DNA of 64,000 nt, from positions 786-64,785 of the forward strand of contig DF237469.1 of the NCBI GenBank assembly GCA_000708835.1, given 5' to 3'. This document shows positions 25,473-36,100 of the stretch, one piece after another. Source of the stretch: Klebsormidium nitens. Taxonomy: Eukaryota > Plantae > Klebsormidiophyceae. Under the pieces are notes generated by a model. That model saw only the letters and a list, made by a program, of their open reading frames with translations, searched no databases and was not told the origin of the DNA. A program made the translations under genes and the position numbers. Position 1 is the first letter of the stretch. Each line of letters opens with the position of its first letter.

Positions 25473-28400
25473 ATGACGTCCCGTTCCAGCCTCTCCCCCC
25501 GCAACAACATCTCCGCCTTCGAGGCCGTCCTCGAGAGCGGGAGCTTCGACACCGGCAGCCCGCGGAGCTCCGGGGGATCCCCCCACCACTCCCCGCGTGC
25601 CGGCGCCCTCTCCTCCCGCGTCGGACGCAGCTCTTTCGGCGGGTACGGCGAAGAATACAGCTCGGATGCTGGAGGGGGGTCCCCCCGAGCTAGCACCGTC
25701 TCCCCCCGGGCAGGGGTCCCGGCTGGCAGCCCCCGGGCGGGGGCAGTGCCGCTGAGGGTGAGCCGGCACCATGTGCGGCAGTCTCCTCTGCGCCGGTCGA
25801 CGAGCACGCGGCCGGCGAGCGTGACGATCCGGCTGAGCTGGCGCGTGTGGTTTCTGGTGGTCAGCGTGTTGGGTATGGCGTTGCTGCTTATCGCGATGCT
25901 GAGGATCGACCCGAAGGCGTACGACGCGGAGCGGGGGAGGGGGTTCGGGTGGGGCGCGGAGAGCCGCGCGATGCTCGAGCAGGTCTGGGAGGGGCGCAAG
26001 GTGAACCTCGGGAGGATGGGGGGGGAGGGGTTTCAGAAGCTGGAAGATACCGGGGAAGTGTGGGAGGAGGACTTTGTCGACGACTTCGTGCATTCTGTCG
26101 GGAATGGAAGCGGGGCGGCGAGCGCACTGAATCGGATGGACATGCCGATGCGGCACATTCACGGGAAGACTGAGCCGTGCCTTCTGCTCTCCCCCCCTGA
26201 AAGAATCGAGAAGCTGCGGCTACCCCCCCCGACCCCGGGGCCTGTAAAGAAGCTGCTCTACTACTCCCTTCCCCCCGAAAAGAAGATTGTGGCGGAGCCA
26301 GGGACTGCAGAAGGGGAGGACTCTGGTCCGGGGGGTTTGGCCTGGATGTTTACAGGAAACCAATCGTTGGAAGAGCGGCGGAGGAGCTTTGAGGTACGGG
26401 AACAGATGGAGGTGTACTGCGGGTTTGCGGATTCCGTGCCTGAGGAGTGGCGGCCGAGCGATGCGGAAGCTGAGGGGGTGGGGAGGGGAGATCGTGTGGC
26501 AGGCAGACGGCTTCTTGCATTGTCGGAGGAGGGAGAAGTCGATTCCGAACAGGCAACGTCTGACTTCGAAGGGTTGCCGTTAGAGAGAGGGGTTGCTGAT
26601 CTGGGGGTTTTTGAAAGCCCTCACCAGGAGAGACGGCCCGTGAGAGGGCTCCTCGAGTTTGATATGGGGGCTGGTGCCATAGGCGAGAGCAACTTAATGG
26701 GGGCAGAGGAAGGGAAAGACGCGAGTAAGGAGGCTGGGGGAGAGGGCGAGAGCGCTGTAAGCGAAAGATTGGCGGGCAGTGGGCCATTCTTTCAAATGGA
26801 CGAGAGGGATATGATCGACATTCGGCGGTGCAAGGTAGCCGTGATTACGGCGGCGTTTGGGGGCGGGGACGAGCTGTACCAGCCGATAGGCGCAACAAAA
26901 GTTGCGCTGAAGAAGGTGTGTTGCTCTGTTTTCCTCATTTTGTGCACAGTTTCGTGCAATTAAGACTGAACTCTGACTGCAACTCTTCAATTGAAGAATT
27001 GCTGCAAGGTCGAGTTTGGTTTTTCTCGTGGTCTCTAATCACCAATCAGTCAGTGACTCACCTTTTGGAGGAGTCTGCTGTTACTCAGGTCATACAATTC
27101 GGATACCATGCGGGTTTCAGAGGTCCCTTCTGCCTCGAGAAGCAAACAGCCAGAGAATCTATGTAGTTTTTGGAGCGTCCGGACTAGCCTGTCTCTACAG
27201 AGTTCCAAAATACACACTCGAAATCAGACTGCCTGGCGGGTGGGCACTCGACTCTCTCGCTTTCCTTGGCCCACCTTCTTTGTATGCGGTGACGTTCGAA
27301 TTCAGTGCTCTTTCGGAGTCCCTTTCACGCTGCACGCGTAACAGATCAAGGGTCTGGCTTGAGGGCAGTTTAACCCAGTACCTCACTCTTCCCCAGGTTT
27401 GCTACATCGCCTTTTGGGACGAGGTGACGTTGGAGGTCCAAGGCGCTGCGGGGTTCGTTCGCGATAGGGACACGCGGAAGATCGGGCGGTGGCGCGTTGT
27501 CGTGGTCTCCAACCTGCCGTTCTCGGACCAGCGGCGCAACGGCAAGATCCCCAAGATGCTCGCGCACCGGGTTATGCCAAACCTTCGGTACTCCATTTGG
27601 GTGGACAGGTCAGTAAACTTGTTTCCCTTCTGCCTGAGGTGATTTGGGCGTCGGATTGCAAGGGTTTCGAAAAAGAGCCCACAGACAGGGTGAAGGCGAA
27701 GATTGGGGTAGGGAGTGCAATTTATTGAAAAGCGAAACTCTTCTGCCCCTTGCACTTCGGCGACCTGTTGGGCGTGCTTTTCCCCTGACCTGACAGGAGT
27801 CTCCACACATCTTCACTTCCAAGACATCGCAATATGTTTAAATACTTGTTACTTCTGTCCCCGCAGTAAAGTCGCAGATTCATTGGGACCCCTGCAATCG
27901 TGGTACAGTGCAAATCAGACATAGCGAATTGTGTCCCGACTGACCAGACAGAAGATTTTCAGTGCAATTGAATCTCCAGGTTATCAACAGTTTGTTGAAG
28001 CACTTTGCAGATGGCAGCGAGCCGCAGTTTCAGCACCTGTTGGGCGTGGCAACATAGACAAAGCCGAAGGTCCATGGGTAAACCTAATAGTATCTTAGTC
28101 AGTCATCTTTGCATGTCAGTGAACCTTTAACCCTTCAGATCGTCAACAGCTTCTTGAAATTAGGAACGTTTCTGCTCCGGAGCAGCCAGTCCTACTTCCG
28201 GCGCGGCTCGCTGGGGGTGCTGGAAGCGCTACTGTGGATGATCAGACATTGTCCAGAATGATCTACTTTGTTGGATCACAAACCCCTTTCGCTCCCTGCA
28301 GCAAGTCGCAATTCGGCAGAATCCTTCGGGCGTGCTTATTTGCCACCCTGACATGCTGAAAGCAACTTGACAGACACATGCCAACCTACAGATCATGCTT

Positions 28401-30720
28401 TTATCAAAAACTGAATCTTCTGCTCCGTGCAGCAAGTCTCAGTTTCGGCGCGACCCGCTGGGCGAGCTGGAGGCGCTACTGTGGATTCTAAGTAAAATCT
28501 TTAGAATTGTTATACTAGTTTCGTTGGTACTATTACTCAGGTCTTTTGGTCCCTTGGCCAGACAAGTCTACGAGGTTTCGGCGCGACCCGCGTGGGCCNN
28601 NNNNNNNNNNNNNNNNNNNNNNNNNNNNNNNNNNNNNNNNNNNNNNNNNNNNNNNNNNNNNNNNNNNNNNNNNNNNNNNNNNNNNNNNNNNNNNNNNNNN
28701 NNNNNNNNNNNNNNNNNNNCGTCCACGTTTTACCGGTTCCGTCGGTACCCGACCTAGGGTCGGTAGTACGTCGGTAGGGACGGTCTACTAGTTCGGTAAA
28801 GTATACGTAAACTACTTACGAATGTTATCAGTTCGTGGACATTCTCAGGCTTTTGTCCCTGCAGCAAGTCTCAGTTTCGGCGCGACCCGCTGGGCGTGCT
28901 GGAAGGCTGCGCTGAAAGGAAAGATGACATCTCAGGCTGTTGTTAGTTTGTTGAAATCCTCATTCTTCTGTCCGCGCAGCAAGTCTCAGTTTCGGCGCGA
29001 CCCGCTGGGCGTGCTGGAGGCGCTGCTGTGGAATACTATGAACAACTCTCAAAATGTTATTAGTTCGTCAAATTCTCAGGCTTCTGTCCCTGCAGCAAGT
29101 CTCGGTTTCGGCGCGACCCGCTGGGCGTGCTGCAAGGCTGCGCTGAAAGGAAAGATGCAATCTTCATATTGTTATCAGTTTGTTGAAATACTCATTCTTC
29201 TGTTCCCGCAGCAAGTCGCAGTTCCGGCGGGACCCGCTGGGCGTGCTGGAGGCGCTGCTGTGGAAGACCGGCAAGCAGCTGGCTATCAGCGAGCACGGCG
29301 CGCGCAGCTGCGTGTACGCCGAGGGGGAGGCCGTCGTGCACAAGCACAAGGCGGGGCCAGAGGAGGTCAAGCGCCAGCTCGATTTTTACCGTGCAGGTGG
29401 GCAGGGGTTTTGTGTGGTTTGCATTTTTTGAGTTCCGCTTTGTCTCCTTTGCAACAAGGGTTTTGAGGTGGGTAGCCTACGGCACATCTTCCGCTACGCG
29501 CCGAGCAATCGTAGGGCCGGAGGAGATCAAGTGCCTGCTCGACTTCTACCGCGCTGGTGGGCAGGGGCTTTGATCTTTCCACTTCCAACTGGAAAGTTTG
29601 TCGTTCCATGATCTTCGTTTCGTCGCTTCGAGGCTAAAAAGATGGACTCCTCTGCCAAGATGAGGGGCTGTTAGGGTCACGTTTGCCTGGATCTTTGCAG
29701 AACGGCAGGTTATCTCGGCTTTTCGTTGTTGTGTTGTTTGGTTGCGGCAAAAAGAATTCGGAGGGGAGGATCCACAGGGCGTCTCCGGGTGATCGTACGA
29801 AGTCTCAGTATGGAATTGCATTATCCAACAAGAAGCTGAGGTTTGACCTCAGCTCGCTTCCTACGGCGCAGGAGCAGGGTTCGTTCTGTTCGCGCTTCTT
29901 TCCTCTGTTTTCGTCCTCTTCTTCTGTTTTTGTGTTGCTTGCGATCGCATCTAGTGTTCAAGGTGGTTGATGCTGGGCATCTCCTGACAAGAAGTGTTTG
30001 TTCTGAGGCTATCATCCGGCGAGCTTGTCACGTGCCCCAGCGGAAGCTCGATTCGAGTAGACACGTTGCGGGACCATTTGACGGTGTAGTAGTGGGTTTG
30101 GTTCAATGATGGTGCATTCTGTGCCCACTGGACCAAAGTGTTGGCAGCATATACCCTCGTCTGCCGGGCATGCCCGTCCGTGCTTTGTGCGAACATTGGT
30201 TGACGTCTTAACTGATCTCCCGCGTTTCTGCAAATGTCTTTCTCGGAATTTAGCGTGTCGAATCTGTCAGTCGGGCTGCGAAGGTCAAGTCTGGGCTCGG
30301 GTTTGGATCATCTCAGCAGGGTTCTTTTAAAAAAGAACGAGGTTTTTCGAGCTTTCAATTTCGCAGCCTTCCTTCCCATATCTGGGGATGACGTTGGTGC
30401 ACGAGTGGTCTCAACAAGTCTCTTGTTTTGATGACGCAGAGGGCTTGCCTGAAAATGCCACATTTGACGGGAAGAAGGCCCTGGCAGAGGCGTCAGTGAT
30501 CGTGCGGGAGCACTCTCCACTGGCCAATCTCTTCATGTGCAATTGGTTCAATGAGGGGGTCCGCTTCACACCTAGAGATCAGTTGAGTTTCGGTCATGTC
30601 CTCAGGAGATTAGACTCGCTTCACATCAAAATGTTCCCTGTGTGCACAAGAAAAGCTCTCGTCAACTCGATAGGGCACACTCGGAAGGCGAAGCCACTAT
30701 CAAAAGTAGAGGATACATAA
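25473..30720 (+). CDS. DUF616 (TOD1/MUCI70-like) putative hexosyltransferase, type II membrane protein, about 706 aa
   Basis: Exons 25473-26915, 27397-27608, 29212-29396, 30440-30720, phases consistent. TM WFLVVSVLGMALLLIAML. Motifs EVYCGF, VITAAFGGGDELYQP, CYIAFWDE, LPFSDQRRNGKIPKMLAHR, RYSIWVDSK, RDPLGVLEALLW, AISEH, CNWFNEGVRFTPRDQLSF. Confidence 0.93.
27850..29211 (+). repeat. Intronic tandem array of at least 9 decayed copies of [3' splice site + 5' part of DUF616 exon 3]
   Basis: Copies of gcag|caagtc(t/g)cagttt/ccggcgcgacccgctgggcgtgctg start near 27867, 28018, 28186, 28302, 28433, about 28562, 28865, 28980 and 29096; the real exon starts at 29212. Monomer about 115 bp, 231-232 bp dimer in the proximal part. 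Confidence 0.92.
28599..28719. other. Assembly gap inside the intronic repeat array
   Basis: 121 N. The flanks (about 28550-28598 and 28720-28820) look like noisy low-quality sequence. Confidence 0.95.
29511..29572 (+). repeat. Decayed duplicate of the DUF616 exon-3 3' end plus 5' splice site in the following intron
   Basis: gggccggaggagatcaagtgcctgctcgacttctaccgcgctggtgggcaggggcttt vs real ggggccagaggaggtcaagcgccagctcgatttttaccgtgcaggtgggcaggggttt; offset about 160 bp. Confidence 0.85.
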
Positions 30721-31759
30721 TGGGGGAAAACCAGTAACGAGGAGTGTAAGATTTATTCGTACAAAAGAAATGAGGTCTTCTTATAGACACAAGTGCGCGC
30801 GCTATTACTTCGTGTTCATCACAAGTACTTGCAACACCTCAAGTTCGGTAGCCACAGCGCTCGAACATACATCCTGATCTAAGCTTTGGCAATCGTGCTC
30901 TACTATTGTCACAACCAGCCACTTATCAAGCAATGGCTCCAGCTGAGTGGCTCACGTTGCATGCGTCAAAAGTCAAGCGTCAACGATCGTATGTATGCCA
31001 TGAGAAGCCTACGGCCGAACTGGCTGGCGTACTTGAAAAGAGACCATCGTCCTACACATGGGATTCGTCCACTTGGCCGGACTTGGCCTAGCTCGATCAT
31101 TTATGCACGGCGGGCCCGCGCCCGGCCGCCGCTAGTTTGCATGAGATGCCGCGAAGCTCTTTGGAAGCTAGGTGTGCACATGGATCTTGCAACATGAGCC
31201 ATGCCTCAATCAAGTGGGCGGCCGCATGCTGCGAATGATCTCTATCTTGTATAAACTAGAATTGAACCGTGCAATTAAAGCCTTGACTAGGCAACCTGGC
31301 ATGCCAACTGTGGGCTCCGGGCATGGCGGCCCTCTTCAATCACGTGGAAACCACTTAGTAGAGCTCGGCGTCCACAATTTTGGCTCACCAAGAGCAGAAT
31401 CAAGGTTTACTTGATTGATTGCATCAACTACCACTGCCAAGAGAAGGAATGGTCTTATGAGGTGTAAGAAACCAGACCTTCGGTTGGCATCCTTATATCA
31501 AGGCCTGTTGTTCCACTTTTTGAGAAAGATCCGGAATCTTATTCATCTGCACGCCCATGAAACATGGATAAAGAACAAAGCCTGTACATATACAGCGACG
31601 GTTGCAGCTACACATCCTTTGAAGTACTCTAGTAGGACCTGGATATGACAAGTGAGTCATGATAGCCGCTTGCTCCTCACGACTGGTTTGTAACGACCAA
31701 AGTTCGTAAATCTACATGATGGTTAGGGATGGTTGCTCACGGACAGATTTTCATAGGAC

Positions 31760-32419
31760 TCAAGTAGGACCTGGAAAAGATTTGAAGTACTCCGTGATAG
31801 CCGCTTGCTTCTCACGACTTGTTCCTTGTGATGATGCATCTTTTGTAGCTTGCTTGTCTCGATCTTTATCCTCCGCTTCCTCCGCTTCCCCTTTCCCATC
31901 ATACACAACTTTGTTGTCTGAAACCCTTCCCCAGGCGGTAAAGTTGTGGTCTTCCTTTCCCCCTGGCCTCAACAAATGTTGTACTCGGACTGGCTTGGTG
32001 GCAAGAAGGGCATCAGAGATGAGAGATCTATGACACATTCTCGGATTCAACTCCGCACACATGACTGCCACCGTTTTCTCTTGTCCAAGATCGACGAGCA
32101 TGTCAAGTGCTTTTTGGAAATCTTCTGTTTGCATGTAATCTGCAAAGCCTCTGAATGACGAACTCCGCCAAGCCGTGTTGAAAGAGTGTTCAATGGGTTT
32201 TCGAAAACCTCCTAATTTCTTTATGTGCTGGTAGGTGATACCTGCTTGTGCCAACAAAGCTGGCATGGTCCCATCTTTGTTGAATTGGGGATTTGTGCGG
32301 GACTTCGGGACAGTCCTCACGTCAAGGAGGACATTTACCCTCACCTCAGACAGCATTTCAATCAGTTCCTCAAGGGACCTCGTTCCATGCCCCACTGTGA
32401 AGACCGTCACCGAGGCCAT
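31760..32419 (-). CDS. Intronless DUF488-family protein of bacterial type, with an acidic/charged linker and C-terminal PIP-box-like motif
   Basis: ATG at 32419 (upstream in-frame ATG at 32452), TGA at 31760-31762. Motifs FTVGHGTRS, DVRTVPKSRTNPQFN, LGG, SFRGFADYMQT, MCAE, CHRSLISDAL are typical of prokaryotic DUF488. Tail ends KQAAITEYFKSFPGPT. Confidence 0.9.
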   Translation of the reverse strand: MASVTVFTVGHGTRSLEELIEMLSEVRVNVLLDVRTVPKSRTNPQFNKDGTMPALLAQAGITYQHIKKLGGFRKPIEHSFNTAWRSSSFRGFADYMQTEDFQKALDMLVDLGQEKTVAVMCAELNPRMCHRSLISDALLATKPVRVQHLLRPGGKEDHNFTAWGRVSDNKVVYDGKGEAEEAEDKDRDKQATKDASSQGTSREKQAAITEYFKSFPGPT

Positions 32420-33125
32420 GCTTCTGGATACCACGGTGCCGCATGCGTGCATTAAACCTGCGCCTTAGATGGTGCTGAACATGCTCAGGAACACTGCGCC
32501 TCCTTTCACCCTACACAGACGATGGTGCACGTCACCCTGCAGTGCAGCATATTTTCCAGGAGATTGAGCTCCACTCAAATCCAGGAAGGCAGCTGACATA
32601 GAGCAGCTAGTACCAGCTCACGACGACGGCCATGTGACCTGTCGAATGCTGTTCAGCAAGGCATGACGCAAATTGCAGTGGCAAAGTCGAAGCCTGATCA
32701 ACGAAGGTGGCAAGAAAGCCTCTGCAGAGAATGCTGCGCTGTCGTCCTCTCGAATCCGTATTTAGACGCCGAAACTAACGAAGTAGAGTTTCAAGATGAG
32801 GTATCGATCGTCATCGAAAGAGGTGCGTCACCTCCACAAAGCTTGATGGCCATGGGCCTGACATTTAACGAGGGAGTTCCTCGTGACTTGAGCAGATCAG
32901 TGCCGAAGGCGCAGAAAGGCGCGCAGCTCCTGGTTGGCATCTGGCAGAGGGTTGGCAGAGCCGCACAGCAAGGCAACTCCGCTTGGACGTGCAGCTTGTG
33001 AAGGTAGATTGTTGCAGACCAGGAGGTCACGCCCCTGCACGCCTGGTCGGGCTGTGTTGCTGAAGTGGCCATCCGGTTCCGAGTCATATCAATCTTGTTT
33101 TGCGGTCCGTTCCGAAATTTGCAAG

Positions 33126-36100
33126 ATGGGGCAGAACATGTCCTTGGAAGAAAAGGTACGCTATTACTCCTGTGAAAGACAAGTGCATGCCTGCTGCGTG
33201 TGATCTTGTCAGCGCAGTAGGGATCTTGTTGCCACTCTGTGCGTTTCTCCAGAATCCTTGCAGTATCTTGATGCAAAGGTGTTCAGACATGACACGCTTG
33301 TAAATACAGACACGCTCCTATGTCTCTGCAGGTGTATGTGTGCACCACCAAGGGGGACATTGCTAACCTTCGCAAGTTGAGAAGCAACGGCGCAGGACTG
33401 GAGGTATGCTTCATCATCAGCTTTCTTGATCTCCCTTGTTCCATCTGACTTGGATTTTCTCAAAATTTCAATCTGCATCGTTCTTGCGGGGGTCCTTTGG
33501 TTTCTCTGTTGAAAATTCAGTCATCGCCTGAATGTTGCATGCACACGAGTCTAGCATATACAAGTCACAGGGCAGCCTCTGTCAAGAAACCCCAAGCATT
33601 TGGAAGCATGGCTGGCAAGAGAGGAGCATTAGGTAGGCCGGCTCCAGTTTCAGCTGATTCACACCTCACCGTGTAAAACTTTTTCCATCTGCCAAATGTC
33701 AGTGGCCATTTACGACTCCATCTTCTGATGAGTTTCCTCATTTGAACCAAGGTTTCTCACTTTTGAAAGTCCAGGGGAAACCCCAGGGTGAGACTATCTA
33801 ATCTCTGAGTCTTGATGTATGTGTTTGCAGTGGACGGATCCTAAGGGTCGCACTTCACTGATGTATGCATGCAATCATGCGGAGCTTTATGAAACAGCGA
33901 AGACCTTGTTGGAGCTGGGAGCAGAGAAAAATGCGTTCCGGCCACGTAAGTACTTGATGAACAACAGGTTAAGATGTTGCAAAAGATCAACTTTGTTTGG
34001 GAATTCTTTTTGAGTAGACTTTGGTGGTCATTTGTGCAATCTTCAATGCACTTGTCCTGTACATTCTGGCATTGTGGCAAATTTTGGCTCCTCCTTTATT
34101 GTGCAAGAATTCCCACTCTGAGAACCTTTCAAAACAAGAAGACATTGAATTAAGAAGACAATAAGACAGGACAGTTGACTTTCTGCATTAGAATCTTATT
34201 AGCTTTTCCCATTGAACCCTAATGCGGGGTTTTTGCCTCCTGTTATTTGCTGTGCTTATATGTTGCACGGTTGGCACTTGCTGATATAAGTCGAAGCAAT
34301 GCTGTTGTTACAGGTGAGGGTGGAGGGACGCCGCTACATCATGCCGCCAGGCAAGGGCAGGAGCGGATTGCTGCTCTGCTGCTTTCATACAATGGTGAGG
34401 AAGTTATCAAGGATCGAGAAGTAGGATAAGATGTGTGGATCCTAGAAGGTAGGAAAATGTAGACGGGTTCAGGCACTAAGAGATCCCGCACCAGGTTGTA
34501 AACTTGGTGCAGGATGTTTGCTCTGAAGGTTGTTCCTAGGCTGGAAGTCGTAAAAAATGGTGATGATGTGACCGACGTCTCTTTAAAGTTCGAAGCTGGT
34601 GCTTCTGCTTCATTGTGAGTTAGGAGGGGCCCTCTGGAGAAGGGACTTGTTTTCAAGACTGGTGTCATCTCCTGGATTGATTAATTTTGGAAGAGCAAAC
34701 TGAACGCAACGACCGTTTTGAAGACAGGCGCTTACCTTCTGATAGCTAGTTACGGACACCGGCCTGGACTTCCCTGTTGAAACTGCAGTGTTGTGTCTTC
34801 TGCAGCGAATCCTTTCGTCGTGAACGATGAGAATGAGACGGCACATGACATTGCAAGGCGATCTGGCTATGTTGGGGTGGTTCGTGCCATTGAGGTAGGT
34901 TTTTGGCTTCACCAGTTTGTCCCTCATTGTTGGAAGACGTTCTTGCTTGTGACTTTGGTGAGGTTGCTGTCGCATTTGCAGCAACCGAGGATTTTGACAG
35001 TAGCATGGCATGGTTGACGTGTACGGACACTCTTTGCAGAAAAAGCAGATATTTTTGGATATCGCATGTGCTTTCTTCTTGTGAGAGCTTGTCATGCACA
35101 TGAAACAGCTCTTCAAACCTGCTTGTATACGAACTCTAGCACATTTGTAGAGGTATCTGGTCTAGGGTGCTCTTGGCCAAGGTTTTCTTTTCACCCGGAA
35201 GTGGCGATGTCTCTGCATCTCAAGCCGTTGCTCTATTTACTGTTGCAGCAAAAGATCTCCTTGTTTGCGGCACCCATGAGGGAGCAGACGGGAAGCGCCC
35301 CAGGGTTTCTGGAGAAGTTTGTGTCGCAGTTCATCTTCACAAACGTGTGAGTTCTCCCTTCTTTCTGATTGTCGCATTGTGTAACACCGTCATCAACATT
35401 ACCATTTCACACTGGAGTGCAGTAATGTTGTCCCCTTCTATGTTATGTAAACTGGTCCTGATCTAAGTACAGGTTCGACCAAGTTTCCACTCGTCTGCGT
35501 AGGTGCAGCACCAAGACTTGCTGATACTCATTCTCAAATGGCATGTCTTTTGAGCTGACTGCTGTAAGTATCGATTTTCAATACTCTGATAATGAAGTGA
35601 AGGCTTTGGTCTCGCTGCAGGTATGTGGTGGTGATCCCCAGCCGGCCTGATATGAACAAGCCTCCAACGTTCATCCTCATGGTGTACCCCTCTGATAGGG
35701 TGAGTCAGCTTCCGCAATCTGTGCACAGTGGGGTACGTCATTTTTCTGATCCGTGTAAGAAAGAGACTGACATGCAGCAAAGCTGCATGACACTGGATCT
35801 GAAAAGTCGAGTGGACAGAGCTTGTCAGATTACATCTTGACCCCGTTGCTTTATGAAAGGACATCAAGTGGGATAGCTGTTCATCTTATAAACATACGTC
35901 GTAGAAGATGAATGAAATTGCTCCGAAAGGCAACCTTGCCTACCAGACACTCTTTATCTGATGACCTGCCCACCACTAGGGTAGCGTCGAAAAGAAGGTG
36001 TGTGAGAGGTTTTTTAGAAAGCCGGGGCAAGAACTGCCTTAAAAGCAGATCCTTTCAAAGTGCTGCTAGAGCTGGTTAGAGGACTCTGTACTTGTACTGC

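Follow-up and report, generated by a model that had tools for sequence, protein, structure and literature searches.

The window analyzed here is a stretch of 64,000 nucleotides of Klebsormidium nitens (contig DF237469.1), which carries, besides the gene under study, a retrotransposon gag ORF and an intron-bearing DUF616 gene. The gene under study lies on the minus strand and encodes a DUF488 protein whose C-terminal tail contains a match to the PIP box, the peptide motif of PCNA-binding proteins. The features of this locus are as follows.

31760..32419, minus strand: coding sequence of the DUF488 protein, 219 aa when read from the probable start MASVTVF (ORF list, Pfam, RNA contigs from four runs)
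31895..32419, minus strand: catalytic core, DUF488 domain with a predicted Cys-phosphatase-like fold (AlphaFold, fold matches, omega 0.125)
31990..32344, minus strand: optional 355-nt GT-AG intron ("exitron") in the core (RNA joint 31989->32345)
31823..31894, minus strand: acidic, fast-evolving linker of 24 aa (omega 0.24, two in-frame indels, pLDDT 55-63)
31784..31822, minus strand: conserved terminal block TSREKQAAITEYF (omega 0.04, predicted helix over the motif)
31784-31807, minus strand: match to the PIP-box core, QAAITEYF (pattern match)
31760..31783, minus strand: nonconserved end of the protein, 7 residues (KSFPGPT), plus the stop codon (orthologue comparison)
31274..31759, minus strand: 3' UTR, no splice joint inside (RNA contigs)
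31618..31688, minus strand: scrambled ghost copy of tail-coding DNA within the 3' UTR (direct repeats D1-D3 and sequence)
32420..32709, minus strand: 5' leader (contig ends reach 32664-32709)
32465-32599, minus strand: upstream ORF of 44 aa in the 5' leader (ORF list)

The open reading frame can be read from two ATG codons. The upstream ATG at 32452 extends it to 230 aa (31760..32452, minus strand), and this translation terminates in KVVYDGKGEAEEAEDKDRDKQATKDASSQGTSREKQAAITEYFKSFPGPT before the stop codon. The second ATG, at 32419 (MASVTVF...), is probably the true start, given that the frame of the orthologous locus described below breaks just upstream of it. Pfam assigned residues 26-149 of the 230-aa ORF to DUF488 (PF04343) with an E value of 2.2e-26 and 93.3 bits, against a cut-off of 22.2 bits and with profile positions 1-121 fully covered, and returned an additional weak match to DUF488-N3a; no further domain was found by Pfam in this ORF. 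The domain begins at residue 4 of the 219-aa protein, so the N terminus carries no targeting extension and is too short to hold an organelle-targeting peptide. Inspection of the protein by eye revealed no K/R-rich cluster suggestive of a classical nuclear localization signal, and its small size means that it could probably enter the nucleus by diffusion.

Expression of the locus was explored using RNA-derived contigs from four runs of four studies, placed on positions 27300-33200. The neighboring DUF616/TOD1 gene displayed clean GT..AG joints at 27605->29209 and 29392->30436, which confirms that the runs are RNA; one run showed an extra, odd joint at 28503->28820, inside the intron. The DUF488 transcript is covered in all four runs, from 31274-31445 up to 32664-32709. 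The 3' ends of the contigs fall at 31274, 31315, 31385, and 31445, corresponding to a 3' UTR of about 315-485 nt, and the 5' leader measures about 250-290 nt from 32419, or about 210-260 nt when counted from the ATG at 32452. Five upstream ATGs occur in this leader between 32482 and 32664. The contigs run colinearly with the genome across the tail and the stop codon, with no joint in the tail or in the 3' UTR, which indicates that the tail and stop codon are translated as the genome reads. At the other end of the gene, a well-expressed different transcript begins or ends at about 32889-32904 and is spliced onward at 33157 (32889-33157), and sequencing-adapter sequence adjoins the contigs at about 32889-32904.

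The 3' UTR contains a ghost copy derived from the last 45 or so coding bases. It comprises a 29-nt piece that is 93% identical to the tail-coding DNA and encodes SREEQAAI, followed by the pieces TCCAGGTCCTACT and GAGTACTTCAAA in swapped order; EYFK is encoded separately, and the copy is out of frame with the ORF. No such copy is present at the orthologous locus. Its position downstream of the tail had raised the idea of a hidden intron from about 31771 to 31629, which would swap the C terminus for a hydrophobic segment, and this was rejected, the contigs of all four runs following the genome without a joint between 31274-31445 and 31991.

Within the core, a splice joint at 31989->32345 was present in four of four runs. 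Its borders are GAG/GTGAGG ... CCAG/TCC, and its use shifts the frame to give a 42-aa stub. The depth of the spliced form was 67.5, 122.8, 14.1, and 98.2 in the four runs, compared with 182.8, 322.2, 35.7, and 109 for the unspliced contig, that is, from roughly a quarter of the unspliced depth up to nearly equal to it. A sizeable share of the DUF488 transcripts is therefore spliced to a noncoding form. Both splice sites occur in the DNA of the orthologue too, and the exitron arose within a gene of bacterial origin.

The closest relative of the protein, obtained with a word search of 5.8 billion protein clusters, is a sequence of 221 aa with 78% identity (P0001) encoded on a 9.5-kb assembly contig. 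Among about 15 billion proteins, no other close orthologue was found. At its locus a TOD1/DUF616 gene is again convergent with the DUF488 gene, showing that synteny is conserved. An exhaustive profile search over 1.84 billion representatives, started from the two eukaryotic sequences with the tail included, scored P0001 at 498 bits and its next match at 184 bits, and thus gave no third orthologue. None bearing the tail was obtained in a tail-only word search with residues 188-230, where one candidate came up and nothing scored. A metagenome scan likewise returned no relative above 54% identity and no third orthologue.

All other relatives share at most 56% identity, measure 170-230 aa, are bacterial or archaeal where named, and lack the tail. 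This indicates that the gene was acquired horizontally, and the bacterial-type domain is in line with the horizontal acquisition already proposed in the original prediction. A tree that included 76 named prokaryotic loci joined the two eukaryotic sequences with full support, on a stem of 1.77 changes per site, without settling where this pair falls among the bacteria. The acquisition is older than the split of the two species. The gene is now a nuclear eukaryotic one, as seen from its UTRs, its GT-AG splice event, its native spliced neighbors, and the conserved synteny. The most likely reading of the tail is that this C-terminal extension of about 45 residues was gained after the transfer.

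The DUF488 family (PF04343) is very widespread in prokaryotes, with 8,518 cluster representatives at E <= 0.001 in a profile search, and includes YeaO of E. coli. No functional study of DUF488 was found in the literature searched, where papers mention it only in passing. The domain in the window is a full-length match that retains all 31 invariant columns of a 120-sequence family alignment, including C121, E123, C129, H130, R131, and S132, and the conserved Cys, His, and Arg residues noted beforehand in MCAE and CHR do lie in such columns. C121 (219-aa numbering) is part of the loop CAELNPRMCHRS, residues 121-132, at window positions 32036-32071. In contrast with the tailless prokaryotic members, the eukaryotic pair has replaced near-invariant residues. 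W127R and R128M fall in this active-site loop, at sites conserved in 95-98% of the prokaryotic homologues, and further changes occur at N86S/A, V125N/H, and P174D, the changed sites being 85-98% conserved in prokaryotes. The loop reads C-x5-R in the plant clade versus C-x6-R in the bacterial family consensus. Together with the long stem, these changes are consistent with a functional change after transfer.

In the AlphaFold model, C121 ends a strand and is followed by the loop and by a helix carrying C129-H-R-S, a phosphatase-like arrangement. The best structural matches were KAP (Z 8.7), laforin (8.4), an archaeal PTP (8.3), and DUF442 (7.8), with rmsd values of 3.4-3.8 over about 127 residues, 8-16% identity, and Foldseek E values of about 1e-3. 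These matches are moderate. Tetrapyrrole methylases score like the phosphatases, and this range of Z is common for models without clear relatives. The predicted core fold most closely resembles that of Cys-dependent phosphatases. It matches PTP/DSP phosphatases with Z values of 7.8-8.7 over about 120-130 residues and has their order of strand, Cys, loop, and helix and, in the plant clade, their C-x5-R spacing; it differs from them in the C-x6-R loop of the bacterial DUF488 consensus and in the low identity of 8-16%. No PDB entry related by sequence was found with single-sequence or profile searches. A comparative-genomics paper on the rhodanese-phosphatase superfamily reportedly treats such domains.

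Gene neighborhoods were examined at 76 prokaryotic DUF488 loci. The 141 flanking genes yielded 147 families, none of them in more than 3 loci, and no association with DNA repair was apparent among these neighbors; HhH-GPD and NUDIX occurred twice each. Redox genes surround two of three inspected prokaryotic loci.

Past the core, which ends in ...KVVYDG, the protein continues with the charged linker, TSREK, QAAITEYF, and finally KSFPGPT, its motif-bearing C-terminal peptide being about TSREKQAAITEYFKSFPGPT. A canonical PIP box behind a charged linker had been proposed from the DNA, and both elements are in place: the eight residues QAAITEYF occupy precisely 31784-31807 and match Q-x-x-[ILM]-x-x-[FY]-[FY], and about 30 residues separate them from the core. 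The published consensus is Q-x-x-psi-x-x-theta-theta (PMC6881253, Prestel et al.; likewise PMC4929162). Written as Q-x-x-[ILMV]-x-x-[FY]-[FY], its four defining positions are all occupied as expected both by QAAITEYF in the window and by QPAITEYF in the orthologue. Positions 5 and 6 are Thr-Glu, which resembles the Thr-Asp pair reported to increase affinity at these positions (PMC6881253).

The surroundings of the motif bear on its capacity to bind. PIP motifs sit in disordered regions, where positive charge within about five residues on either side tunes affinity and negatively charged flanks argue against binding (PMC6881253). The net charge of the +/-5 flanks is +2 in the window protein and +1 in the orthologue. 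The whole tail has a net charge of -2 and -6, respectively, with the flanks within +/-5 staying positive, and the acidic tail overall may weaken PCNA binding. The motif lies 7 residues from the C terminus in the window protein and 3 in the orthologue. With 120 homologues as input, AlphaFold gave the core a pLDDT above 90 and residues 176-219 a pLDDT of 55-63, a low confidence that agrees with the predicted near-terminal disordered placement and is a proxy for disorder only. A short helix is predicted exactly over the eight residues QAAITEYF.

This architecture, with a motif that ends a disordered tail on a small catalytic domain, is that of C-terminal PIP clients such as FEN1, p21, and the archaeal NucS and NreA, which the DUF488 protein also resembles in the mildly positive flanks and the short helical turn predicted over its motif. 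It differs from these clients in having a domain that is not known to be associated with PCNA or DNA and a wider tail that is acidic, and in being known from two species only. The original prediction had drawn a parallel with HMCES, which has a PCNA-binding PIP box in its C-terminal part (bioRxiv 10.1101/2021.07.29.454365). Both are small Cys-dependent enzymes with prokaryotic relatives and a C-terminal motif of the PCNA-binding type. The conserved Cys of the DUF488 protein is, however, internal, at the strand-loop-helix junction, whereas that of HMCES/SRAP is N-terminal. Pfam found no SRAP domain, which defines that family and carries its catalytic N-terminal Cys, and the fold matches were phosphatases and methylases; membership in the HMCES/SRAP family was consequently rejected, and HMCES serves as an analogy only.

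Selection on the tail was assessed by comparing the window gene with its orthologue, at a dS of about 0.8. The core evolved with a pairwise omega of 0.125. The 24-codon linker has an omega of 0.24 and two in-frame indels of 12 and 6 nt, and the 13-codon block TSREKQxAITEYF that follows has an omega of 0.04, with 4 synonymous changes and 1 replacement. The sole replacement is Ala in the window to Pro in the orthologue, at an x position of the motif. Conservation of the motif in orthologues had been set as a check of the prediction, and the key positions are kept in the one orthologue available. The reading frame is preserved across both linker indels as far as the motif, and the DNA similarity stops right after it, where KSFPGPT in the window stands against TAV in the orthologue, each directly before the stop codon. 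By our own arithmetic, about 6 replacements would be expected in the block at the linker rate, and the probability of observing one or none is about 0.02. The synonymous changes in the block point to a constraint on the peptide and not on the RNA. This is suggestive of purifying selection on the PIP block, from one pairwise comparison of two species only.

Tails of prokaryotic members were also compared. In archaea, the extreme C terminus is the usual site of PCNA motifs (MacNeill 2016, PMC4929162). Among 80 prokaryotic genome loci, three Bathyarchaeia genes (L045, L063, and L082) end in TYPLFTKETPQRTLGDFG(T/SG) before the stop codon, the C-terminal peptide of this group being ...KETPQRTLGDFG. 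A word search seeded with one Bathyarchaeia sequence gave 120 cluster representatives (P0124-P0243) with 76-85% identity, all of which end in a near-invariant ...KETPQRTLGDF followed by 1-8 variable residues. Position 8 of the motif, counted from its Gln, is variable, mostly Gly, instead of a second aromatic residue. A relative with 59% identity ends in QKTLFDFS, and the Bathyarchaeia tail is modeled as a low-confidence coil (pLDDT 60-64). These results make the Bathyarchaeia C terminus a candidate archaeal PCNA-binding peptide.

In the tree, Bathyarchaeia form a separate clade nested among bacteria, beside a Desulfobaccales sequence whose tail lacks the motif, and the single Nanoarchaeota DUF488 sequence has no tail. 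A terminal Q-x-x-[LI]-x-x-[FY] is found in two of three lineages with PCNA-using hosts and is absent from all 72 named bacterial loci (Fisher p = 0.001, for a small lineage count and a 7-residue pattern defined after seeing the data). The expectation that archaeal homologues would carry a terminal PIP box and bacterial ones would lack it was thus borne out in part: the Bathyarchaeia clade has Q-x-x-L-x-x-F and the 72 bacterial loci have none, but the second aromatic residue is missing from the archaeal version. As judged from these sequences, the gene seems to have been taken up by PCNA-using hosts on two or more occasions, with the terminal motif following in two of the three lineages.

The reading that we favor, and to which we give about an even chance, is that the acquired DUF488 enzyme is a putative PCNA client, tethered to the clamp by a PIP box that arose once the gene had been transferred. 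The DUF488 domain and the PIP motif are each known, and their combination is not described in the literature searched. A prokaryotic DUF488 gene would have been acquired by an ancestor and would then have gained a flexible tail ending in TSREK-QAAITEYF. The motif would place its Gln in the Q-pocket of DNA-loaded PCNA and its Ile, Tyr, and Phe in the hydrophobic one. Through the acidic linker, the small catalytic core, with its putative Cys-phosphatase-like fold and conserved loop C-x5-R...CHR, could then reach DNA at replication or repair sites. PCNA binding, action in the nucleus, and a substrate linked to DNA, for instance a DNA end that is phosphorylated or bears another modification, are what we infer from this arrangement. 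Taken as a whole, the original prediction is supported in part: the acquired gene, the canonical and conserved PIP match, and the disordered tail stand, HMCES is an analogy only, and the genes flanking 76 prokaryotic DUF488 loci show no association with DNA repair.

Selection on the block shows function and not which function it is, and the block may instead be a functional short linear motif with a partner other than PCNA, or one serving intramolecular regulation, with the PIP likeness being coincidental. We regard this as somewhat unlikely. The conserved stretch includes TSREK, five residues upstream of the PIP core, the gene neighborhoods show no link of DUF488 to DNA, and PIP-like peptides form a broad, overlapping class (PMC6881253). 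The four key positions of a PIP box are nevertheless the ones that were kept, the only change being at an x position, and the AlphaFold model does not show the tail docked on its own core. Moreover, an archaeal clade converged on Q-x-x-L-x-x-F at the same place, which an unrelated eukaryotic partner hardly explains.

It is improbable, in our view, that the match arose by chance in a young, lineage-specific tail without specific function, with an apparent conservation that comes from having two species. Canonical PIP matches may be false positives (PMC6881253), and across all six reading frames of the window the strict pattern has 4 matches, where about 4.2 would be expected; by itself, the motif match is therefore not significant. 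The chance probability of the strict pattern is about 0.007 per 219-aa protein and about 4e-4 in the last 20 residues, at which rate a genome-wide scan meets several such terminal matches by chance. There is a single orthologue, and the contrast between block and linker reaches a P of only about 0.02. Against this reading stand the 13 codons with four synonymous changes and one replacement at that dS, next to a linker with a higher omega and indels, and the reading frame, which both indels leave intact as far as the motif, with the similarity collapsing directly after it. Judged from this alignment, the conservation of the block in the single orthologue, with DNA changes that are mostly synonymous, raises the motif above chance.

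That the motif binds PCNA as a PIP degron, with CRL4-Cdt2-dependent destruction on chromatin in S phase, is highly improbable: the Thr and the acidic residue that occupy positions 5 and 6 are similar to the TD pair in degrons, but the defining basic residue at +4 is absent, being Pro in the window protein and lying beyond the end of the orthologue at +3, and TD without a basic +4 residue causes no degradation (PMC6881253).

If the PCNA-client reading is true, the gene would be a clean example of an acquired enzyme wired into a eukaryotic hub by a motif on a new disordered tail. Should PCNA binding fail, what is left is an ordinary expressed gene transfer with a lineage-specific tail. The clamp peptide on the eukaryotic protein, mirrored in an archaeal clade, makes for a concrete hypothesis, in which the enzyme works on DNA beside the sliding clamp.

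A wider version of this hypothesis would make this DUF488 branch a sliding-clamp client whose docking peptide was re-invented for each host clamp. If true, it would mean that DUF488 has the fold of a Cys phosphatase and acts on the ends or lesions of DNA where replication or repair takes place, and it would offer a first clue to the function of the family. Switching of the peptide with the host has a precedent in the IS1634 transposases, whose bacterial members have the beta-clamp motif QLxLF at the C terminus and whose archaeal members have one of the PCNA type (PMC4549789); the logic is that of a clamp peptide re-invented after transfer between domains of life. In contrast with DUF488, where binding is predicted and the bacterial half of the pattern is weak, the binding of the transposase was shown biochemically. 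We consider the wider version doubtful, and equally doubtful the set of host-specific peptides that would go with it, namely, Q-x-x-I-x-x-Y-F in the plant lineage, Q-x-x-L-x-x-F in Bathyarchaeia, and QLxLF in a few bacteria.

Most bacterial DUF488 members end within a few residues past the core, which indicates that clamp coupling is not family-wide. Among 291 bacterial tails, the beta-clamp pattern Q[LIVMF]x[LIVM][FL] was found 3 times (QMSLL, QLKLF, and QLDLF) versus 0.3 expected, and [LIVM]x[LIVM]F 9 times versus 2.3 expected. This enrichment was not replicated in an independent set of 73 metagenome tails, which gave one poor match per pattern. Beta-clamp-like tails thus appear to be rare in bacteria and are putative clamp motifs. 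One bacterial member (P0327; L087, 5001-5558) has QLDLFG at its C terminus, which fits the beta-clamp consensus exactly. As an anecdote, this gene adjoins those for an Lhr helicase, a PolX polymerase, a GIY-YIG nuclease, and CinA.
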